DNA of 64,000 nucleotides, taken from sequence record OR620964.1; one strand, given 5' to 3'. The notes under the pieces were generated by a model. That model searched no databases. It saw only the letters and a program-made list of their open reading frames with translations, and had not been told where the DNA came from. Positions 2,879 to 61,933 of this stretch are shown here, piece by piece. Numbering within the stretch: the first letter of the stretch is position 1; the number at the start of each line of letters is the position of its first letter. Made by a program: the position numbers and the translations under genes.

Positions 2879-3477
2879 ATATGATTTAATATCCCGCGAA
2901 CTACATCAGATACGGTCATGTCGTTTGTGTCTAACACTACGTCATAACCACCAGGTACGCTTTTATATCTGCCCAGCAATTCAGTAAAGGCAGATTCAGT
3001 TAGGCGCTGTTCGATATTATCCGTCTCAAGACTACGACGAGCACGACGAGCACAGGATGTCTCATAGCTACAGGTCAGTAGTGTTGTAAGACGGCGCGCA
3101 GGAGCCAACAACTTCCACGTAGATTCATAGACGCTTGCTGTTTCTTTATCAATAACCTGATACGCATACGTTGATGGGTATCCACGATCAGCAATAACGA
3201 TTGTGTTAGGCACAGTCATTGCTTTGGCAACAAGCTCCATTGTTGAAGCCCGTGCTGCCAGCAACATTAAAAGTTCTGACATACTGCCAATGTGATGGTC
3301 ACTATGCAAAACAATGTTACGTATATCCTCAGCTAGCGGCGTACTGCCAGGCTCTCGAATACGCACAACATTATATCCGCGCTTTTGAAGTATCTCAGTG
3401 AGTGAAGTACAGACAGTTGTTTTACCTGAACCGTCTGGTCCCTCAATGAGTAGATACATGGGAGTTGATTTAATCAT
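2869..3477 (-). CDS. tmk: Thymidylate kinase
   Basis: P-loop IEGPDGSGKTT, REPG motif, DRxxxSxxAYQ motif (ADRGYPSTYAYQ), 202 aa. Confidence 0.93.
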   Translation of the reverse strand: MIKSTPMYLLIEGPDGSGKTTVCTSLTEILQKRGYNVVRIREPGSTPLAEDIRNIVLHSDHHIGSMSELLMLLAARASTMELVAKAMTVPNTIVIADRGYPSTYAYQVIDKETASVYESTWKLLAPARRLTTLLTCSYETSCARRARRSLETDNIEQRLTESAFTELLGRYKSVPGGYDVVLDTNDMTVSDVVRGILNHICD

Positions 3478-3521
3478 GGGTTATCCTCACTGCATCACGA
3501 ATGACGCAGCATCTAATCCTG

Positions 3522-4013
3522 TTAGGCGAAACGGCCACCTCTCCAAGCGGCTTTAATAAGCATCTTAGCGATCGTTTCATTCTTCATTATTTTTCTACTG
3601 GCTCTGCGCATAACACGAGCACTGCCCAACCTATACACGACGATAAGACCACAACCCTGTTCTTCAATTCGGGCAATAATTCTATCTCCGTGCGATGCGT
3701 AGAGCGTTTCGTCAATCGCAAAATAAACACGCATAGCAAACGGCAGATACTTATGCCATTTTTTATCCGTATTGAAATCCTGCCAGCAGCTTTTGACCTC
3801 AGTGATAACTATATCAGACTTGGTATTTAAACACCAGACGTCTGCTCTAAGGTTACCGTGTTTGATTAGACCAAACTCTACGTGGCAGGAGTATCGTTTC
3901 TTGTTCCAGTACCCAACAATGCTTTCAGTAATGAAGTTAGTCTTATCGGGTCTGCTCATTGACACAAAATCTGCGACGGGCTTACACTTTACGCTGCCTC
4001 GTCCTCTAACCAT
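3522..4013 (-). CDS. MmcB-family DNA repair / PD-(D/E)xK endonuclease-like protein
   Basis: LRADVWCL...ITEVKSCWQDFNTDKKWHKYLPFAMRVYFA matches the MmcB pattern RAD...EVKSS..DF..D.KW..Y...C..FYFA. Confidence 0.8.
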   Translation of the reverse strand: MVRGRGSVKCKPVADFVSMSRPDKTNFITESIVGYWNKKRYSCHVEFGLIKHGNLRADVWCLNTKSDIVITEVKSCWQDFNTDKKWHKYLPFAMRVYFAIDETLYASHGDRIIARIEEQGCGLIVVYRLGSARVMRRASRKIMKNETIAKMLIKAAWRGGRFA

Positions 4014-4459
4014 TAACTATGTTTGGCCAGAAGTTTAAGGCCTTTCATCAGAATAGGCAGGAAGCCTTTGTCAATCTTGCTTACCGCTTTATCGACAGAG
4101 AACCATTTGCGGTCGCGCTGGTTAACTTCCATGTAGTCCTGTTTCAGCTTAGTTACATGCATCAAGTACCAAGTAACGTGCTGACGGCGACCTGTAGAAC
4201 CTTTCACGTATTCAGATTGACCAATCACCATACCAGGGCGTCCAATTGCTCCGGCTTCTTCATCTGCTTCTTTCAATGCAGACTCAATAAGAGATAGGTC
4301 AGGCTCAAGCCCACCTTTAGGCAATCCCCAATTGTTCGCATGTTTGGTTTTGATCATTAGTATCTCGATCTCACCTCCCTTAATACGATATGGAACAACG
4401 CCTGATTGAATACGTGCTGCTTTTTCTGCTTTGGCAGATAGTGAGATCATTATCTCCAT
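4013..4459 (-). CDS. NUDIX hydrolase
   Basis: Nudix box LPKGGLEPDLSLIESALKEADEEAG. N-terminus M-I-S-L-S-A. Confidence 0.92.
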   Translation of the reverse strand: MEIMISLSAKAEKAARIQSGVVPYRIKGGEIEILMIKTKHANNWGLPKGGLEPDLSLIESALKEADEEAGAIGRPGMVIGQSEYVKGSTGRRQHVTWYLMHVTKLKQDYMEVNQRDRKWFSVDKAVSKIDKGFLPILMKGLKLLAKHS

Positions 4460-50858: not shown

Positions 50859-51488
50859 TTAGTTTATTTCCATTAGGTCAAGAATATTCTTAACAACTGT
50901 CTCAGGCCCGATAGACACTGCAATGTTAAGAGGTAAGTGAAGACGTTTAATAAACAACTCAGTTGGGTCTACAGATCCACCTGTGACAACAACACGAGGT
51001 ATATCTCGGAACATTTCCAGTAAGTCACGCAGGCGCTCCATCTTATACTGGGTGCTATCCATAATCACGTTAGTGATAACCAGCATTGAAGGTCGCTGTT
51101 GCTTCAACTTCTCATAGTCGAATCGATCGCCATACAGCGTTACCCATCGTGGCTTGCGTACCTTAGTACCTGCGGCCAATACTGCATTTCTAAATACGTG
51201 GAGCGCTGCGGCTTTGGCCCGCGCATCAGAAGGGAAACTACTTAGAACAGCTATCGGACATCCGTGAAGTGGGTCTTCAAGCAATTCTATAAAATTCTCA
51301 AGTTGAGGAACAACGGCAGTAGTCTTTGTTTTGAAGAATTTATTATTCGTTTTATAAGGCTGCACTGCGTGTTCTAGTTCAAACTCATTCATACCATGAT
51401 ATATTGTATGAGGGTCAGCACCAAGTGCGCGGAGTCTTGCACATACTTCTGGTGGAAAATCAAAGTCAAGCATTGCGCTCTCCTGCAA
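50859..51488 (-). CDS. Hypothetical protein, possibly a degenerate DnaC/IstB-like P-loop fold
   Basis: The alpha/beta order resembles an AAA loader, but no Walker A motif is visible. Confidence 0.4.
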   Translation of the reverse strand: MQESAMLDFDFPPEVCARLRALGADPHTIYHGMNEFELEHAVQPYKTNNKFFKTKTTAVVPQLENFIELLEDPLHGCPIAVLSSFPSDARAKAAALHVFRNAVLAAGTKVRKPRWVTLYGDRFDYEKLKQQRPSMLVITNVIMDSTQYKMERLRDLLEMFRDIPRVVVTGGSVDPTELFIKRLHLPLNIAVSIGPETVVKNILDLMEIN

Positions 51489-52860: not shown

Positions 52861-53229
52861 TTACGTTGTCTGTGTGTTGCGCTTAGATGCCTCACTTGAT
52901 TCAAGAACAACGCCCAGGAACTTCCAGCGCATTGGAGCAGCAGGGTGCACAAGATCAACAGGTTCGATGCGGTCCCACGTCACTAAACGTATCGTATTAC
53001 CCAGTGTCTCCATTAAGTCCCTAGGAACATCAGCCTCATATTCCGTATAGGTTGCACTGACAGTGCTCGTGGCAGCACCTTTTACGAACGCCGTCACTAC
53101 TATATCAAGACGAGCCGCACTCGGACCAACAATAGCACGAGGAACAATAGTGAATCCTGCGTGTCTTAAAGCAGAGCACATGATATGTTCAAAGTCATTA
53201 TGACCTACGGCACTATTAATCACGTCCAT
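52861..53229 (-). CDS. Hypothetical protein (122 aa)
   Basis: TAATG coupling to the helicase C-half. Confidence 0.6.
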   Translation of the reverse strand: MDVINSAVGHNDFEHIMCSALRHAGFTIVPRAIVGPSAARLDIVVTAFVKGAATSTVSATYTEYEADVPRDLMETLGNTIRLVTWDRIEPVDLVHPAAPMRWKFLGVVLESSEASKRNTQTT

Positions 53230-54239
53230 TAAAATTTCCTCAGACCAAGAGCGCGTGGTTGGCCTTTCTTAACTGTTGATGGTTCGAAGTAGTCTGGCAT
53301 TTCATTACCATACAACTCTTCCTTATCTACTATGCCCATCCAATTACGTAGCTTCTTAGGTGTACGTTTCGCTTTGGCATATCCCAGCTTCCAGCACATC
53401 TTAAGCACAGACCGAGCAAAGCCCATTGATTTTTCCATGTTAGGATCAATGAACATACGAATAACAGGAGTTCTCTTATTCTCCATAGGAGTTAAGATAC
53501 GGCAGGACTCTTGCTTCCAGTTAGGCTCGTTATTCATAGGCATGATGTAGTATAACGTATCCCACTTAGGTACGTTAAGTCCACGTTGCATCAGTCTGCG
53601 CATACCGATGACACAACGAATATCACCAGCACGGGCAGCATCCACAATAGGCTTACGTCGCTTGGCTTCTTTCGCACCACCAAGGAATACAGCAGCAATC
53701 TCTTCTGTATAGTGCTCATTAATTCTACTGCATAGATCACGCGCCTGCTCGGTAAACATAATAGGTATTGCAATGCTACGTCCAGCATCAAGATCTTTTA
53801 TAATCCACTCGAAGATCTTGTCATTACGTTGTTTATGGTTGGCAAGAAACTTACAGAATCGCATCCAACCAGCTTTACCAGTATACTGATTGCGCGAGTG
53901 TACTTTAGTGCTGGTCTTATGGATAGTTATCTTGGGCACAAGTTCTTTCACAAAGGCTTTTGCGACAACTGGACCCATAATACTCTCCACAATCCATTGG
54001 CGTCCATCTTTCCTGACTGGAGTCGCTGTCAGACCGTAACGAAACTTCATTCTCATGTTAGCAAGCGTTCTACTGAAACAGGCAGCATTTGCGCTGTGGC
54101 AATTGTGAACTAGAACGCCTTCATCAGAATCTTTTGGATACACATAGAAGTTATGATTATGCTCAATTCCTATGTCAAATACTTCTGTATCCTCACATTC
54201 AAAAACATCTACTTTTGAGACTTTCATTATAATTTCCAT
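53229..54239 (-). CDS. Split-intein C-fragment fused to SF2 (UvsW-like) helicase C-extein
   Basis: N-terminal 46 aa ending VFDIGIEHNHNF...VLVHN, then C-H completing DE-CH. Helicase motifs III (TATP), V (MQRGLNVP) and a VI-like QESCRI follow. Confidence 0.92.
   Translation of the reverse strand: MEIIMKVSKVDVFECEDTEVFDIGIEHNHNFYVYPKDSDEGVLVHNCHSANAACFSRTLANMRMKFRYGLTATPVRKDGRQWIVESIMGPVVAKAFVKELVPKITIHKTSTKVHSRNQYTGKAGWMRFCKFLANHKQRNDKIFEWIIKDLDAGRSIAIPIMFTEQARDLCSRINEHYTEEIAAVFLGGAKEAKRRKPIVDAARAGDIRCVIGMRRLMQRGLNVPKWDTLYYIMPMNNEPNWKQESCRILTPMENKRTPVIRMFIDPNMEKSMGFARSVLKMCWKLGYAKAKRTPKKLRNWMGIVDKEELYGNEMPDYFEPSTVKKGQPRALGLRKF
54102..54239 (-). mobile_element. Split intein, IntC (46 aa)
   Basis: Block F (VFDIGIEHNHNFY) and block G (LVHN|C), with +1 Cys at 54099-54101. 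Confidence 0.92.
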
Positions 54240-54271
54240 TAGCCGAATGAGACTGTATCAAAACTGATAGG

Positions 54272-54280
54272 TATTTACAG
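54272..54280 (-). promoter_or_regulatory. CTGTAAATA motif, copy 4 (upstream of IntC-helicase)
   Basis: Exact match 33 nt upstream of the start, in the 42-nt divergent gap. Confidence 0.65.
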
Positions 54281-54281
54281 A

Positions 54282-55340
54282 ATGGATAACAGAACAAAAC
54301 CGTTTAAAGATGACTTAAAATCGCATGGTAGAACTTACGGATTCAAAGTGATTGAATATGGACGCACTAAAGTATCTAAAGATACATCAATCAAGTGCAA
54401 GTGCGGAGCTATTGAGGTGAGGGCAGCGCAAGCCATTCTCAAATCATTTGCCGGATGTACTACATGCCGTAAAGAAAGAATGCATCAAGCTCAATCTGAT
54501 ATTAAGAAAGGCAAGCAGCCACACAATACAAAAACAGAGGCAGAATACAAAGCGCAACTAGCAGAGCGCAATCCTACGATGAAATTAGTAGGTGCGTATG
54601 TGAACACTCACACAAAGACTCGGCATATGTGTACTATATGCAAACATGAACAGGAGTACAGGCCACTAAACATATTGAGGCTAGGATGCAGAAATTGCGC
54701 AGGGTTAGTTCCAAAATCAGCAGACTCGTATAACCAAGAGCTACTGAAAAAGAATATACCTTTCGTAATAACAAAATATTTAGGGTCGAGAACGATAACG
54801 GAACATACTTGCACTCGCTGCCTTGAGTTTAAAACAATGTGCTCTCCTACGAATGCCCTAAAAGAAGGTAAACTACGCTGCATTTCTTGCGATGAAAGTA
54901 TGATGTACTCCATTGAGATAGCAGGGAGGGAGTTCAAAGTTAGAGGATACGAGCGCTATGCACTTCCACATATCGTAAATAGATTTGGAATTAAGAATGT
55001 TATCTGCGATTCAGATAGACGAGTCCCAGTAATAGATCTAGGTAAGGGTAAGAAACATCGTCCAGACTTCTACATTCCTAATGCCAATCTTTTGATTGAA
55101 GTTAAATCCTTAACTACAGCAGGTTTAGGGGGTATTTATTTCAATCACACTCCAGATGCGCTATTTAGAAATATCAAGCGCAAGAAAAAGAAAGCAGTAG
55201 CACAAGGATATACCTACATGCTACTGCTTATATCCAATACTGGACTACAGATAAAACTACCTAAAGATTGGGAGTCTTACAGCAGATCAGAATTGAAGTC
55301 TTTAGTTAAATCTAAATCGTCATCCTCCGTTAGCAACTGA
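54282..55340 (+). mobile_element. Free-standing putative homing endonuclease (zinc-ribbon repeats plus PD-(D/E)xK nuclease), inverted within the fractured helicase gene
   Basis: Three Cys-cluster repeats (CKC..CTTC, CTIC..CRNC, CTRC..CISC) and a C-terminal HRPDFYIPNANLLIEVKS. It is the only credible plus-strand gene. Confidence 0.82.
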
Positions 55341-55594
55341 GCTTCAACATAGTCTCCACGAGTATTTGACCAGAACAAGTGAGTAGGTGTGCAAACAATT
55401 TCTTTGTCACCTACTGTAACACGACACATCTTCCTTACAGTCTTTTTCGTTCGAGATTCAATAGGTCTGAATTCCTGCTCACCTGTATCCAGATTTTTAG
55501 ACAAAACAGAGAATGGCATAGCATTACCTTCAACAATATCTGCGATATCAATCAAACCCTGTTCCGTCATAACCCGATGTCCGCGAGTGAAACA
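55277..55594 (-). mobile_element. Split intein, IntN (105 aa)
   Basis: Cys1 at codon 245 (55592-55594), block A (CFTRGHRVMTEQG), block B (IVCTPTHLFW, TxxH) and an acidic tail. Confidence 0.92.
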
Positions 55595-56326
55595 TTCATC
55601 GACAAATATAGTACCAAAGTTTTCATTCAACATCTGCATACGCTTACGCGCAACTTTTGTATCTTGAATCAAAGACTGGTACGTAACAAGAATGATTTGA
55701 AAGTCTTTATAGTCCTGGTCTTTCTTTGGAAAACCAAATAGCTTCTTACCATGCTCTTCCTCAAGGTCAGGGAGATTGGTCATCTGCTCTATTGTCTCAT
55801 AGAAGCCATCAAGAAAGTCTTTCTGGTCAGCCATGATAATTGTTTTATAGCCAGTAGATATACCACCAGCTATACCCATCACGGTTTTTCCACTACGTGG
55901 AGGAGCTTGTAGCAATCCACACAACTCATCCAGCAATTCTTTTGATGGAGCTACTTGGTAATCACGTAAGGACGCAGTAAACTCAACGTCATAATCAAAT
56001 GGTGTTCTATTCGTTAAATTCTTAAACTTAACTTTCTTTGGATTCAATCCTGTTGTGGATTGGAAGCGATGCATTTCACCATAAGGTATAGTCACATGCT
56101 TCTTATCATTAATAGTTGTGTATGAGGCTAGGGCTGTTACGCCAATCAAGCCTCCTTTATCGCAAGAACGACATTCTCCGCTTGGACGCTCTGGCCTGAA
56201 CTCGCAATTACGACACACGGCATCATCAAACTCATGCCGAGTCAGGCGCTTAATTATTTTTCCAGCATCTACAATTTTAATTGGAATATGCAGACGACTA
56301 TCGACAATTACCGTAGGTTTGGCCAC
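55277..56326 (-). CDS. SF2 (UvsW-like) helicase N-extein fused to split-intein N-fragment
   Basis: Q motif LRDYQ, Walker A APPRSGKT, TYQSL and IFVDE, followed by intein block A CFTRGHRVMT; ends at a stop after 105 intein residues. Confidence 0.93.
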   Translation of the reverse strand: MAKPTVIVDSRLHIPIKIVDAGKIIKRLTRHEFDDAVCRNCEFRPERPSGECRSCDKGGLIGVTALASYTTINDKKHVTIPYGEMHRFQSTTGLNPKKVKFKNLTNRTPFDYDVEFTASLRDYQVAPSKELLDELCGLLQAPPRSGKTVMGIAGGISTGYKTIIMADQKDFLDGFYETIEQMTNLPDLEEEHGKKLFGFPKKDQDYKDFQIILVTYQSLIQDTKVARKRMQMLNENFGTIFVDECFTRGHRVMTEQGLIDIADIVEGNAMPFSVLSKNLDTGEQEFRPIESRTKKTVRKMCRVTVGDKEIVCTPTHLFWSNTRGDYVEAQLLTEDDDLDLTKDFNSDLL

Positions 56327-56328
56327 TT

Positions 56329-56883
56329 TTACTTCCTTTGATTCGGCAACCCATATTCGCGTCGTTCGATAAGGGCCAAGATTTCTGTAAGTGATTTGAA
56401 TGCGAAGCCTGCTTTATCGATATCTTTTAAGTAAAAATCAATCTCTTCTTTTAAGAGAGTTAGATTATCACTGTATCGATAATACTCGGCCATTATATTG
56501 CGTACCATACGCTCACGCTCTTTCGCAGCACCAAGGGCTTTGAGATCTCGCGAATACGTAACCGTTGCATAGTCTTGAAAACGCTCTAACATATCAGCCA
56601 ATGCTTTAATTGCTGAGTTTGTTTGCACGTATATCTCGGTCATGCGGCTACGATAGGCTTGGTCTTCTATCACTGAATTAGCGAGTTTGTTCAATGCGTT
56701 GGGATGGTCTATGTTAAGTGTACGAATTTTACGCATACGAAACATCTGCTGGCATTCCGTTCTATACTCATCAACCGTTAGCTGAAACAATGGATTGGTT
56801 TTATACAGTTTACGGATGCGCTTATACCGTTCATCTGACTTAACTTTCTTCGTTAAGCGAGAAATATCATCGAGCGCCATCAA
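56329..56883 (-). CDS. Helical protein, possibly UvsY-like recombination mediator
   Basis: Coiled-coil protein next to a UvsW-like helicase. The C-terminal IDFYLKDIDKAGFAFKSL loosely recalls UvsY. Confidence 0.4.
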   Translation of the reverse strand: MMALDDISRLTKKVKSDERYKRIRKLYKTNPLFQLTVDEYRTECQQMFRMRKIRTLNIDHPNALNKLANSVIEDQAYRSRMTEIYVQTNSAIKALADMLERFQDYATVTYSRDLKALGAAKERERMVRNIMAEYYRYSDNLTLLKEEIDFYLKDIDKAGFAFKSLTEILALIERREYGLPNQRK

Positions 56884-58495: not shown

Positions 58496-58754
58496 TTTTA
58501 TTCTCTACTATGAATTGTACTGTGTCTTTTATATTTACAGCTATAATACGTTGCTTTGATTCATGCAACATACCGTTTAGCAGTCCAAGAATATCTGCAA
58601 CAGGGCAGCCAGCCGAAGTCTGGAATACATCGATATCATCAGGTATATCACCGAAGTCGAGTAACCAGAATGTCCGTAGCACAGACGTTAAAAACGCAGG
58701 ACGTTCAACTGACTGACGATTCAGAAACTCACATATCTGTTCGGCAGTAATCAT
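58464..58754 (-). CDS. Hypothetical protein (96 aa)
   Basis: TAATG coupling to the polymerase stop. Confidence 0.5.
   Translation of the reverse strand: MITAEQICEFLNRQSVERPAFLTSVLRTFWLLDFGDIPDDIDVFQTSAGCPVADILGLLNGMLHESKQRIIAVNIKDTVQFIVENKNEEMSPTKDS
58532..58540 (-). promoter_or_regulatory. CTGTAAATA motif, copy 5 (upstream of clamp)
   Basis: 37 nt upstream of the clamp start, inside the 96-aa ORF. Confidence 0.55.
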
Positions 58755-61700
58755 TAGTTAAGGAACCTCGTCATTGCTTTCTTCAACAACTTATTGCTAA
58801 TCTTAATTGTCTTCTTAGCTTTAGCATCAGGCCCTGACACTTTAGCTTTCTCGGCTTCTTTAAGAGCTTCGGCAGCAACATAGGCTTCAAACGTTTTAGT
58901 ATTGGCAGGTAACTCTTTCAGCCACTGTTTAACGTCTTTGTTATCCTTATTCGTCAGAGGATTTACCTTACCCATCTTAGGAATCTTGATATCATTAGCC
59001 CACAGTTGTTTCTTCATCCAATCACCCATCAGGTGATATTGATTTTCCATGATGTCTTTCGTTACGGCATCAACATCAAGGTCTTTTTCGTTTAGATCAT
59101 CACGCTTAATTTCCAGACCTTTACGTATAAGTTTCTCAAGTCCCTTATACGAGAAGTCCCATCCCTTAACGTCTCGCTCAGTCGCACCAATCTCAAAGTC
59201 AATCTCAGGTACTGAGGTAAACTCATAGTTATGGCGCTCTTTCATTACCTGTGTAACGGCAGAAGTCATGGAGCGCTCTATCATATCGAGTGCCAGGAAT
59301 ATCCACTTATAATCACAGTCAACGGTTAAGGAGTCATGTACCGATACGTTAAGTTCGAAGTCTGGGTACTGACCATTTGCTTCCCAGTATTCAAACTTCA
59401 TTCGGTCAAGAATACGTATAGCACTCATCATCAAGTCAGAACCAAAGCCCTGTACTGGACTGTTTACCGCACGGCGGTCACAGGCAGCATGAACCATATT
59501 CGATTCTCTGTGTGATTTCGGAATCATGAATCCCCACAGATGACGACGACGACCTAGAGGCGATTCAACAAAGAAGTTCTCATGTGCAAACTTCTTAATC
59601 TTATCAAACCATTTGTACCCGATTGGGAATCTATCAAGGAACTGTCCCTTAATCTTACCAATCTCTTTTACATCACGTCCAGTTGATTTAGCGAGACCGT
59701 TATCACCCTGCTGATAGATCAAGCCGAAGATAACTGTCTTAACTGCGTTACGAATGGGCTTGGTTACTTCTGTGATTGGAATGCCAAAGAAGTATGCTGC
59801 GTTTATTTTATGTACGTCACCTTCAACGTCAATAAGATGATGAATCCAAGGGTCAGGTACTGTGCGGAAACGTCTACGCAGTCTAGCGCCCTGTTCAAAT
59901 ACATCGGCAACGCCTTGGTCACCTGATATAATAGACCAGCCCCTAACTTCATGTGCTGAGTAGTCGACCTTTATGAGCAAGCGATTCTTACGCGATATCA
60001 AAATACGCTTAATCAACTTACCCATTTCAGAACGGCTGGGAATTTGCTGTAAGTTTGGATCAGATGCGGAAGTACGTCCTGTCACGATCCTCAAATAGTT
60101 ATACTGAGGTCTTAGACAACGGTCGTGTTTAAAGTCTTCCGACTCTCCCCATAGCTTAAGCAAGGACTTCACGTAGGCGTTACGTAACTTGTATGCTTTA
60201 CCTAACTTAGTATACAGGTTAACAAGAGGGTTATCCTTATATGCCTCTTGGAAGTCTTTATCCAGTTTACCATTCTTCTTACCATTGGATCGGGCTGCTG
60301 CATCACTCTCTTTCAGAGGTTTGAGCTTCATGATATCAAAGAATAGTATCTGCTTGTGTTCTGACTTAGACATATCAAACTTATTAGCATCGACTCGTCC
60401 CATAAGACCGAATGCTGGTATTTGATCATCCTTACATATCTTGGCGTTGGCTTCACGTACCTCAGGACTAGATAGAAATTTCTTCTCTACCTGCTGTATC
60501 TCTTGGTTAATTGGACTGTTCGGCAAGTTGAGTTTAAACAGATAATCGATATCTGCCATCGCACCAGACACTTCCATGATACTAAATGCATGTATCTGGT
60601 CACTTACCTGCTGGCTTACCATAGACTCATACTTCTCGTACTTGATATCTTTTGCACGGCGACGCTGTGCCATGCAGATATGATATGGTACGATTACGTC
60701 AACCGCAGCATATTCCTGTACGTTCTCATCAAGGTCTACCTCAGAAATGGTCTTACGCATTTCTTTACCGAACGCAAGGTCGAGATACACCGTACAGCCG
60801 TACTGCATCGTCAAGTTGGCTAAGTTATAGTAACCACTACCAGTAACAAGTTGCAACGACTTAGCATTCTCATCATTGATAAACTCGCCAGCTTGAATAT
60901 CCCATATATCAGCACGGAAGGAACGAACACCGCAGTTAGACTTGATGACGTTTAAGTCAAACTTACCGTTTGTGAATATCTGGTACTTGTTTGAATTGTA
61001 TTCGAAGAAGTCACGAAAAAGCTCAGTTACCTTTCTTACTTCCTTTGGACTGAAAGGGCTATCTCTGTGATAGATAGGAACAACATATGCAATCTCGCCA
61101 TCCATTGAAACTTGAATCGTCTGCAACTTGTTCTTAATGCGATTCAAGTTCTCTGTTTCGGTATCGATACAGGGATGCTTGGCTTTCTTCATCTTCTTTA
61201 TTAACTTTTCTACATCACTTACTTTTGTCAGGTACTTTAATGTCCAGTTACGTTTCTTACCGCACGTTATCTTAGGAATCTTATAAGGCATCCCTTTCTG
61301 GAACCAAGGTAACATCCAACGGCTCATGTAACCTAACGTATAGCTAGTGCCGCTGATATTACGTGGGTTAAGCACCTGATTGAAACTAATATTAGGTACG
61401 TGGATGAATTCGTGTGTCTTCTTCTTGTGCTTCACCTTAGTAGGTATCGTTACACCATACCAAGAACTTATCACACCAGATGCTTGCTCAACACGCTCCA
61501 CTTGTGCTTGGTTGATTGCACGTAATGGTTGATTACCGAACGTGATAACATAGTCCGGCTTGAAATCACAAATAACTTCACGCATACGATCGGCGAATGC
61601 GTTGTTCGCGTCCTCCTTGTACTGATCAGACTTCTCATACGTCTTGAACATATTGTAGGATATGACCAAGAAGTGCCAATCATCCAGAGTAGTCTTTAAT

Positions 61701-61933
61701 GGGAATACATCTTCCAAATACTGGACTTGGTTTAAAAACACTTCGCCCGTAGTTCCACTGAATATCTTACCTGCCTCTAAATCCTCTGTAGGCATGTGGT
61801 CAATGACTAACAGAGCTTTGCCTGCTTTCGGGTTCTTGCTATTATGCTTTAGAACGCGAACAAAGTCATAGCACTGGACATCTTCGAAATTAGCTGGTGG
61901 ATCATACGGAAGTGTTAGGTGAGATAGCTTCAC
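58754..61933 (-). CDS. polA: Family A DNA polymerase with N-terminal UDG-like domain and 3'-5' exonuclease
   Basis: ExoI CIDTETE, ExoII NGKFD, ExoIII YAAVD, TGRTSASDPNLQQIP, motif A DYSAHEVR, motif B RNAVKTVIFGLIY and motif C VHDS. Confidence 0.95.
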   Translation of the reverse strand: MKLSHLTLPYDPPANFEDVQCYDFVRVLKHNSKNPKAGKALLVIDHMPTEDLEAGKIFSGTTGEVFLNQVQYLEDVFPLKTTLDDWHFLVISYNMFKTYEKSDQYKEDANNAFADRMREVICDFKPDYVITFGNQPLRAINQAQVERVEQASGVISSWYGVTIPTKVKHKKKTHEFIHVPNISFNQVLNPRNISGTSYTLGYMSRWMLPWFQKGMPYKIPKITCGKKRNWTLKYLTKVSDVEKLIKKMKKAKHPCIDTETENLNRIKNKLQTIQVSMDGEIAYVVPIYHRDSPFSPKEVRKVTELFRDFFEYNSNKYQIFTNGKFDLNVIKSNCGVRSFRADIWDIQAGEFINDENAKSLQLVTGSGYYNLANLTMQYGCTVYLDLAFGKEMRKTISEVDLDENVQEYAAVDVIVPYHICMAQRRRAKDIKYEKYESMVSQQVSDQIHAFSIMEVSGAMADIDYLFKLNLPNSPINQEIQQVEKKFLSSPEVREANAKICKDDQIPAFGLMGRVDANKFDMSKSEHKQILFFDIMKLKPLKESDAAARSNGKKNGKLDKDFQEAYKDNPLVNLYTKLGKAYKLRNAYVKSLLKLWGESEDFKHDRCLRPQYNYLRIVTGRTSASDPNLQQIPSRSEMGKLIKRILISRKNRLLIKVDYSAHEVRGWSIISGDQGVADVFEQGARLRRRFRTVPDPWIHHLIDVEGDVHKINAAYFFGIPITEVTKPIRNAVKTVIFGLIYQQGDNGLAKSTGRDVKEIGKIKGQFLDRFPIGYKWFDKIKKFAHENFFVESPLGRRRHLWGFMIPKSHRESNMVHAACDRRAVNSPVQGFGSDLMMSAIRILDRMKFEYWEANGQYPDFELNVSVHDSLTVDCDYKWIFLALDMIERSMTSAVTQVMKERHNYEFTSVPEIDFEIGATERDVKGWDFSYKGLEKLIRKGLEIKRDDLNEKDLDVDAVTKDIMENQYHLMGDWMKKQLWANDIKIPKMGKVNPLTNKDNKDVKQWLKELPANTKTFEAYVAAEALKEAEKAKVSGPDAKAKKTIKISNKLLKKAMTRFLN

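Follow-up and report, generated by a model that had tools for sequence, protein, structure and literature searches.

The 64,000-nucleotide stretch of DNA analysed here (the window) corresponds to positions 1–64000 of Yersinia phage fHe-Yen9-02 (OR620964.1; 100% identity), a jumbo phage of 248.7 kb that came from sewage and has Y. enterocolitica O:9 as its host. Within it, a helicase is encoded by two minus-strand genes, each of which carries one part of a putative split intein, and a third gene lies between them on the opposite strand. The N-half, annotated as coding sequence (CDS) fHeYen902_061c 'DNA helicase', occupies 55277–56326 and encodes 349 amino acids from a GTG start; the C-half, CDS 059c 'hypothetical protein', occupies 53229–54239 and encodes 336 amino acids from an ATG start. 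Neither half-gene contains a frameshift or an internal stop, and both lie inside a long run of same-strand genes that presumably forms one transcription unit. Between them, the plus-strand open reading frame (ORF) at 54282..55340, CDS 060 'hypothetical protein', encodes a putative homing endonuclease of 352 amino acids with an isoelectric point of 9.7. The two intein fragments and the antisense nuclease gene together make up a 1.49-kb cassette at 54102–55594. Each element of this cassette is present as a single copy in the fHe-Yen9-02 genome, and no second intein or paralogous nuclease turned up when the window, translated in all six frames, was scanned with hidden Markov models (HMMs).

A single uninterrupted helicase gene is found in Erwinia phages Yoloswag (534 amino acids) and pEa_SNUABM_22 (533 amino acids) and in Dickeya phage JA29 (536 amino acids), where it has a common synteny: DNA polymerase, four small ORFs, helicase, small ORFs and phosphoesterase. 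The N-extein of fHe-Yen9-02 (55595..56326, minus strand; helicase residues 1–244) matches residues 1–244 of Yoloswag gp164 with 70% identity (E=3e-129), and the match stops at ...GTIFVDE. From its residue 47 (CHSANAACF...) onwards, the C-half aligns to gp164 residues 245–534 with 78% identity (E=2e-180), which delimits the C-extein at 53229..54101 on the minus strand. Together, the exteins comprise 244 + 290 = 534 amino acids, the exact length of gp164, and the break lies between ortholog residues 244 and 245, inside motif II (Walker B; DE/CH, where here and below a slash within a motif marks an insertion site). The N-extein holds the Walker A motif (APPRSGKT), matches Pfam ResIII over residues 119–245 (1.3e-8) and runs to the D-E of motif II. 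Motif II is completed by the +1 Cys of the C-extein (CHSANAACFSR), which also contains motif III (GLTATP) and a Helicase_C domain, and matches PHROG 16 DNA helicase (4e-24) and RAD25/XPB (2e-4). Empty alleles read DECH at the break site in 13 loci, DEVH in 5 and DEIH in 3; with DECH in 13 intein-less loci, many empty alleles have the +1 Cys as a native residue.

The helicase belongs to superfamily 2 (SF2) and appears to resemble XPB/Rad25, on family and structure signals that are weak; the intact ortholog matches NF045503 (XPB/Rad25) at 2e-16, far under the model cut-off. An identification as UvsW-like, made in a reading of this DNA from the letters alone (the sequence-only reading), has been dropped, as searches of the PDB and NCBIfam gave no UvsW match and their best signals, themselves weak, were to XPB/Rad25. 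The first 110 or so residues of the helicase match no known domain and form an extension common to all orthologs. A conserved N-terminal CxxC...CxxC pattern (CRNCEF...ECRSC) lies at N-extein residues ~38–56.

The segments that follow the N-extein and precede the C-extein are well supported, from their motifs and profile matches, as the N- and C-terminal parts (IntN and IntC) of a naturally split class-1 intein. IntN (55280..55594, minus strand; 105 amino acids) begins directly after ...FVDE with Cys1 of block A (CFTRGHRV), has CTPTHLFWS (TxxH) as block B, and continues through an N4-like block, YVEAQLLTEDDDL, into a variable tail that ends in DLL and is followed by the TAA stop codon of the N-half gene (55277–55279, minus strand). 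Cys1 and the block B residues T69, P70 and H72 are invariant in 10 loci; block B of the related cassette in Dickeya phage JA11 reads TEDH. IntC (54102..54239, minus strand) contains block F, VFDIGIEHNHNFYV, and block G, GVLVHN, with its terminal His-Asn. This terminal HN and the +1 Cys that follows it are invariant in all loci compared. The split layout consists of a stop after the N4-like block and a new start 15–19 amino acids ahead of block F, and the fragment lengths fall inside the published ranges for split inteins (IntN 88–105 amino acids, IntC 33–54 amino acids; PMC2677866). In all eight DE/C loci that were scored, the 28 amino acids before block B carry a charge of +1 to +6 and IntC a charge of −3 to −8.

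Profile searches point the same way. NCBIfam model TIGR01445 (intein_Nterm) matches residues 245–318 of the N-half at 24.6 bits (cut-off 24.5), and TIGR01443 (intein_Cterm) matches residues 19–47 of the C-half at 24.8 bits (cut-off 15.6). The best solved relatives of the single IntN sequence in the PDB are the NrdJ-1 intein (3e-4) and the gp41-1 intein, while a family profile built from 10 IntN sequences matches NrdJ-1, the bacterial intein-like HINT domain 2LWY (4e-7) and the Spl DnaX mini-intein (8e-5). Block F of IntC matches the IntC of Spl DnaX and of Npu DnaE. Judged by their E-values, by both NCBIfam cut-offs being passed and by the NrdJ-1 profile match at 7e-8, the intein and extein matches are far beyond chance.

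The annotated start of the C-half, ATG 54239 (MEIIMKV...), probably lies four codons too far upstream. Across nine loci, the conserved start is the second ATG, at 54227, ATGAAAGT (MKVSKV...), and the motif TAATGGAAATTAT(A/T)ATGAAAGT is kept before the C-half in related loci. A TAA comes immediately after the upstream ATG in one contig (L014), and another (L011) has no upstream ATG. Since the second ATG is the conserved start across loci, IntC is probably 42 amino acids long, rather than the 46 counted from ATG 54239. Most of what the sequence-only reading proposed for the two halves is borne out: its two minus-strand ORFs are present, its 244 + 290-residue helicase broken in motif II agrees exactly with the ortholog alignment, and its 105-residue IntN, with Cys1, block A and TxxH, ends at a TAA that can be read at 55277. 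The comparison with intein-less orthologs from related phages and the intein HMM search that it suggested gave, respectively, an exact break at residues 244/245 and scores above both NCBIfam cut-offs. For IntC, its block F and terminal HN followed by C-H-S stand, whereas its length of 46 amino acids gives way to 42. It also described the locus as two genes and a gap, and overlooked that the gap holds the 352-amino-acid plus-strand nuclease ORF.

This antisense ORF probably encodes a homing endonuclease in which three zinc-ribbon DNA-reading modules precede a PD-(D/E)xK catalytic domain. The zinc-ribbon region (about 54396–54890, plus strand) comprises three four-Cys, treble-clef-like modules (C39/C41/C59/C62, C117/C120/C136/C139 and C177/C180/C200/C203), and catalytic-type residues E224, P261-D262 and E273-x-K275, all invariant, mark the C-terminal nuclease domain (54903–55337, plus strand). 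The protein matches PHROG 559 (1e-15), and its homolog in JA11 (29% identity, E=4e-25) scores 66.1 bits against DUF7487 and 54 bits against the DUF4379 treble-clef family, passing both thresholds. AlphaFold2 (AF2) models reached a predicted local distance difference test (pLDDT) score of 86.8 for the whole nuclease, and a pLDDT of 91.2 with a predicted template modelling score (pTM) of 0.84 for the nuclease domain. The core of the domain model is alpha-beta-beta-beta-alpha-beta, with the invariant residues at canonical PD-(D/E)xK places: helix 17–28 carries E17; the strands 44–47, 50–52, 56–58 and 63–69 (D55, E66 and K68) follow; and a second helix, 84–100, leads to the last strand, 104–110.

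Foldseek comparison with BFVD gave very strong matches, the best being a PaBG 'putative homing endonuclease' (3e-21), together with treble-clef zinc-finger proteins, restriction endonucleases and Csr/MutH/HJR-family nucleases. Matches in the PDB, which are weak and count here as no more than a check on consistency, nearly all have the PD-(D/E)xK fold (Vsr, cap-snatching endonucleases, PvuRts1I/AbaSI and the R2 endonuclease). Searching PDB sequences with the nuclease, as a single sequence and as a profile, found no nuclease, and the only match was the zinc-ribbon of mitoribosomal mS66. Membership of the EDxHD/Vsr-like group was considered and rejected: there is no NUMOD or Vsr-family Pfam match at E≤1 and no His/Asp motif. 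The nuclease profile misses 3R3P (I-Bth0305I) even at E≤10, and 3R3P is absent among the 50 best Foldseek matches of either search. The nuclease-domain family counts 1,997 representative clusters at E≤1e-3 and 485 at E≤1e-10; in the best 150 representatives the domain is C-terminal, behind N-terminal regions of widely varying length. No open-access paper mentioning DUF7487 was found. A second, shorter DUF7487 ORF of 275 amino acids occurs in one uncultured contig (L006:5050–5877, minus strand), free-standing and intergenic, immediately upstream of the helicase N-half and outside any intein.

The nuclease gene is the only long non-overlapping plus-strand ORF in the window. From the coordinates of the two ORFs, its 3′ end and that of the IntN gene share a convergent overlap of 64 nucleotides (55277..55340), within which the final 21 codons of the IntN gene, stop included, lie antisense to the final 21 nuclease codons. 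At its other end, a divergent spacer of 42 nucleotides (54240..54281) separates the nuclease start (plus strand) from the C-half start (minus strand). This spacer presumably holds translation signals for the nuclease and C-half genes and possibly their transcription signals as well; a GGAG-type Shine–Dalgarno sequence lies ahead of the nuclease start in most loci. The guanine–cytosine (GC) content of the cassette is 39.0%, against a window mean of 44.1%, which places it at the 0.16th percentile of same-size windows. Low GC and a lone long plus-strand ORF are a foreign signature. Outside the locus, OR620964.1 annotates two 'DNA polymerase' CDSs that flank the helicase region about 7 kb apart, at 50859–51473 (204 amino acids) and 58754–61933 (1,059 amino acids).

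The same arrangement recurs in other phages. Searching with the IntN region recovered seven uncultured N-halves, every one broken at ...DE/CFT..., and a search with the nuclease added further loci, for a total of nine uncultured contigs with the module at the same DE/C site. In contigs L006–L015, the N-half is accompanied by an antisense ORF of 338–352 amino acids that overlaps its 3′ end by 32–55 nucleotides, a spacer of 29–66 nucleotides and an IntC of 42–49 amino acids ending ...HN/CH; L009, L010 and L013 end short of a complete C-half. Across all related loci, the convergent overlap measures 32–69 nucleotides and the spacer 17–66 nucleotides, and the 3′ end of the antisense nuclease lies over the IntN 3′ end in all 11 loci examined. 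The DE/C-site inteins have diverged to 44–72% identity, and the exteins among these phages are about 50–65% identical.

A more distant cassette is present in Dickeya phages JA11 and JA33, in which IntN is 36%, IntC 39% and the nuclease 29% identical to fHe-Yen9-02. In JA11, it sits about 30 codons downstream in the helicase gene, after GLTATPKRKD, just past motif III. The JA11 nuclease ORF (375 amino acids, DUF7487 plus treble-clef; L004:5033–6160, equal to MH389777.1 129462–130589) lies between two 'putative DNA repair helicase' CDSs and is unannotated in GenBank, and by tblastn JA33 has a homologous stretch at this position that is likewise without annotation. By tblastn, JA13 has no intein match; in JA29 the helicase gene is intact.

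Further inteins were met in this host family and beyond it. One 39-kb contig (L015:3948–8382; Logan SRR27204706) encodes a single helicase with two inteins, its N-half reaching 784 amino acids. The extra intein is contiguous, of LAGLIDADG type and placed in the P-loop (APPRSGK/CVTGDT...VSHN/TPTML; Pfam Intein_splicing 2e-21); the second is split, with an antisense nuclease, at DE/C. Insertions in the P-loop, in motif II and after motif III thus make the helicase family an intein hotspot. The sites number at least three and all fall in ATPase motifs, for which inteins are known to have a preference (PMC4760082). In a Hainich groundwater contig (L040:2850–5360; ENA ERZ1292632), a SNF2-type helicase carries a contiguous intein, VADE/CFAAG...GVLVHN/SQRIKN, that is 30% identical to IntN. 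A DUF559/Vsr-type nuclease ORF (3451–4137) is nested within it on the same strand in another frame, and the host frame is open throughout; the locus could be an intermediate in endonuclease invasion or an assembly frameshift.

No contiguous version of the cassette intein was found in the same helicase, in a protein homologue search that covers proteins up to 1.75 times the query length and could therefore let contiguous forms escape, and an IMG/VR search with the IntN profile was without matches. A metagenome scan for contiguous versions returned the SNF2 intein of L040 and a fragment (L041) only, and a protein search with the IntC end returned only one further relative. An IntN-like segment also occurs in a 'hypothetical protein' of Ruminococcus phage NatCom_29429 (PV036441.1 54839–55078; 32% identity over 85 amino acids, E=8e-5), and may be another intein of the same clade in an unrelated phage.

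Occupied and empty alleles can be compared directly between close relatives. When joined, the flanks of the cassette in L008 are identical at 60/60 nucleotides to the empty site of the cultured phage pEa_SNUABM_22, and the alignment breaks at the cassette edges; overall, L008 and pEa_SNUABM_22 are only about 82% identical. JA11 and JA29 are 90–93% identical either side, with a break at the cassette edges and about 33 nucleotides of divergent extein sequence around the junction. An uninterrupted single helicase ORF is present in 20/22 IMG/VR relatives; of the other two, one is the JA11 locus and one, L039, matches only in part (query residues 148–248), with an ORF read from mid-gene. Occupancy is patchy within genera, as in JA11/JA33 versus JA29/JA13 and in the Alexandravirus-like L008/L012 versus pEa_SNUABM_22.

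Substitution patterns indicate that every part of the cassette is under purifying selection. Between L008 and L012, the ratio of nonsynonymous to synonymous substitution rates (dN/dS) is 0.02 for IntN, 0.07 for IntC, 0.11 for the nuclease and 0.05 for the C-extein, and the proportion of nonsynonymous differences (pN) is far below that of synonymous differences (pS) in every pair; dN/dS values of distant pairs, whose synonymous sites are saturated, were not used. In the same two contigs, a tract of about 250 nucleotides (L008:3850–4120) that takes in IntC, the spacer and the first ~100 nucleotides of the nuclease gene is 96–100% identical, compared with 70–83% in the remaining module, and pS for IntC is 0.13 against 0.58–0.77 elsewhere. 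The equivalent of this tract in the window is ~54100–54380, and the tract may reflect recent conversion or a nucleotide-level constraint on divergent expression signals.

It is proposed that 54102–55594 is, probably, a selfish cassette inserted in frame in motif II of the helicase, where it makes two genes of one. Two precursors would be made, N-extein–IntN of 39.7 kDa and IntC–C-extein of about 38.5–39 kDa, and the basic IntN stretch before block B would associate with the acidic IntC to give one HINT fold. An N–S acyl shift at Cys1, attack of the +1 Cys on the resulting thioester and cyclisation of the terminal Asn would then release a 534-amino-acid, 61.3-kDa helicase with an intact DECH, together with the two intein fragments; the expected splice junction peptide is MQMLNENFGTIFVDE-CHSANAACFSR. 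In a mixed infection, the nuclease would cleave related phages at their intact DE-CH site, and recombinational repair of the cut would copy the entire cassette into the empty site. The phage's own site would be immune to the nuclease because the insert destroys the target site. The cassette would itself supply the IntN tail and stop, through the antisense overlap, and the IntC start region. Helicase-strand transcription would oppose that of the nuclease gene, possibly restraining nuclease expression.

Several points weigh against this proposal. With a single sequence, TIGR01445 clears its cut-off by just 0.1 bit, and Pfam PT-HINT and Intein_splicing stay under their gathering scores. In fHe-Yen9-02, IntN has a net charge of −6 overall and IntC of −8, so that any electrostatic attraction between them would be local only. 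The nuclease falls 0.5 bit short of Pfam DUF7487 (7e-6; 26.5 bits, gathering score 27), and Foldseek searches of the PDB with the whole protein and with the domain gave a best E of 0.012 (range 0.012–0.3) at a template modelling (TM) score of about 0.3. A scan of 53000–56600 for sigma-70 promoters and intrinsic terminators found none in the spacer or the overlap, and promoter-like sites in this interval are fewer than in shuffles; such a scan says nothing about a jumbo phage that may have promoters of its own. Most pairs are saturated at synonymous sites, which leaves the dN/dS estimates resting mainly on the close pair L008/L012. The whole case, from splicing and nuclease activity to homing, is inferred from sequence.

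The intein fragments might instead act as a high-affinity dimerisation module, the halves assembling non-covalently into a two-chain helicase that lacks the peptide bond. Such reassembly has a precedent in a phage enzyme, the NrdA of Aeromonas phage Aeh1, which is reported to be split by a mobile endonuclease gene and joined via interaction domains without splicing (PMC3045599; also cited in PMC2677866). In the helicase cassettes, however, the residues that serve only the splicing chemistry (Cys1, the T and H of TxxH, the penultimate His, the terminal Asn and the +1 Cys) are invariant at 44–72% intein identity and are kept even at 36–39% identity in JA11. The break, moreover, lies inside the four residues of DE/CH, so that some 150 amino acids of retained intein would occupy the ATPase site, and a purely non-covalent helicase is accordingly rather improbable. 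It is also unlikely, if somewhat less so, that the split intein splices while the antisense ORF has lost, or never had, the role of a homing endonuclease, being a domesticated or other DNA-binding nuclease in a vertically inherited cassette. The PDB fold matches are weak enough to allow this; the family is large and architecturally varied (1,997 clusters), and could therefore fill several roles; no open-access paper was found to mention DUF7487; and at about 82% identity between L008 and pEa_SNUABM_22 the insertion is not demonstrably recent. Against vertical inheritance stand the patchy distribution within genera and the annotation of viral structural relatives as homing endonucleases. The ORF is also intact in all loci, with invariant catalytic residues and a dN/dS of 0.11, and the nuclease always accompanies the intein halves, even at the second site, and is absent wherever the intein is absent.

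Decay of the helicase into a pseudogene, disrupted by a mobile nuclease gene and left with functionless intein remnants, would account for the interrupted gene and for a C-half annotated as 'hypothetical protein'. It is very improbable given that both exteins are full length, colinear and under purifying selection (C-extein dN/dS 0.05), with no frameshifts or stops, and that the arrangement persists across phages whose exteins are only about 50–65% identical. One deposited genome alone could contain errors, and the true gene might be one ORF with an ordinary contiguous intein and a nested endonuclease domain. The nuclease is on the opposite strand, however, so no frameshift could fuse it into the intein, and another 10 assemblies, made independently and from different samples, repeat the layout of stop, overlap, spacer and restart; an artefact of assembly or sequencing is close to untenable.

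Beyond the selfish cassette as such, a broader reading can be put forward tentatively, at somewhat less than an even chance: that the cassettes form a distinct split-intein mobile lineage, driven by a homing-endonuclease family of about 2,000 clusters that combines treble-clef arrays with PD-(D/E)xK domains, in which the antisense layout is functional and the element hops between motifs. Transcriptional collision with the helicase operon would throttle the nuclease, and the IntN stop and tail would be locked to the nuclease gene. The hops would be among the SF2 motifs DE/CH (motif II) and RKD/G (after motif III) and, for the related contiguous intein, motif II of SNF2. If true, this would be the first tractable system for watching fractured-gene homing and the birth of a split intein, given that fHe-Yen9-02, JA11/JA33 and relatives free of the cassette are all in culture. 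As cultured phages with the cassette have close relatives free of it (JA11/JA33 versus JA29/JA13), homing and models in which endonuclease invasion creates split inteins are directly testable.

Several consequences follow for annotation and for use. CDSs 059c, 060 and 061c should be read as one helicase and a mobile element; this holds for JA11 too, where the unannotated nuclease ORF should be added. An SF2 helicase broken inside its Walker B/DExH motif joins the hosts of naturally split inteins, and the ten related, diverged IntN/IntC pairs with a native +1 Cys are candidate orthogonal protein-ligation tools. The large nuclease family, for which no published characterisation was found, is a probable new type of homing endonuclease with a modular zinc-ribbon DNA-reading region.

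No description of the helicase allele was found in open-access papers mentioning fHe-Yen9-02 or JA11 or in intein surveys, and none of the cassette nuclease in open-access papers on split inteins and jumbo phages, treble-clef homing endonucleases or DUF7487. The sequence-only reading had suggested a new insertion site; motif II of an SF2 helicase is indeed without a prior description found, yet the site is not unique to this phage, as nine contigs share it, JA11 and JA33 have a homologous cassette elsewhere in the gene, and L040 carries a related intein. Its description of natural split inteins as rare was overstated, since those with an intervening endonuclease are established in phages, including the cultured jumbo phage MIJ3 with its split PolB (PMC6892783). 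The fractured-gene phenomenon is already known, and the helicase case extends it and overturns nothing. What sets it apart from published cases is a new host and site, the SF2 helicase broken in motif II, a new nuclease family that is not GIY-YIG, EDxHD or HNH, the conserved antisense layout, and its occurrence in cultured phages with close relatives free of the cassette.

Dassa et al. (2009; PMC2677866) described 'fractured genes' in marine phage metagenomes, among them gp41-1, gp41-8, NrdJ-1, NrdA-2 and IMPDH-1. Those loci have all three ORFs on one strand (26 loci) and the endonuclease 3′ end over the start of the IntC gene (15 loci); their endonucleases are of GIY-YIG or Vsr-like (EDxHD) type, and they are hosted by gp41, IMPDH, DnaE, NrdA/J, ligase and terminase. 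The helicase locus shares their combination of host halves, intein halves and intervening nuclease gene, with fragment sizes in range, and, as in gp41-1, has a positive N stretch and a negative C fragment. Unlike them, its nuclease is antisense, with its 3′ end over the end of the IntN gene rather than the IntC start, and consists of treble-clef modules and a canonical PD-ExK domain (DUF7487-like); the host is an SF2 helicase interrupted in motif II, and the phages are cultured. With the NrdJ-1 (PDB 8UBS/9OMB) and gp41-1 (6RIZ/6QAZ) inteins, the helicase intein has in common the HINT fold, Cys1 and the block B TxxH, and about 90 residues align to NrdJ-1. The similarity is remote and is reliably seen only with the family profile, and the +1 residue of the helicase intein is Cys. 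In NrdJ-1 and gp41-1, the +1 residue is Ser.

The PolB gene of MIJ3 (PMC6892783) is the parallel from a cultured jumbo phage, a replication/repair gene that a split intein breaks in two, with an endonuclease ORF between the halves; its host is PolB, its nuclease is HNH and its block G reads GNNILVHNS, with a different +1 residue. I-Bth0305I and the EDxHD family (PMC3239194; PDB 3R3P) are bipartite like the cassette nuclease, with an N-terminal DNA-binding region and a C-terminal restriction-endonuclease-type fold. EDxHD enzymes also occur in fractured genes, and Vsr is among the best, though weak, structural matches of the cassette nuclease; unlike it, they carry NUMOD modules, and their E/D/H/D active site lacks the lysine of (D/E)xK (PMC3239194). 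Cyanobacterial DnaE inteins (Npu/Ssp) are likewise naturally split, class-1 and equipped with Cys1 and a +1 Cys, and Npu DnaE IntC resembles the helicase IntC in block F, whereas the DnaE halves are cellular genes at distant loci with no endonuclease between them. The SNF2 intein of L040 occupies the equivalent DE/x position of motif II and, at 30% identity, shares the CTPTHLFW block B and the GVLVHN ending; it differs in being contiguous, in its +1 Ser, in its same-strand, out-of-frame DUF559/Vsr-type nuclease and in its SNF2-family host.

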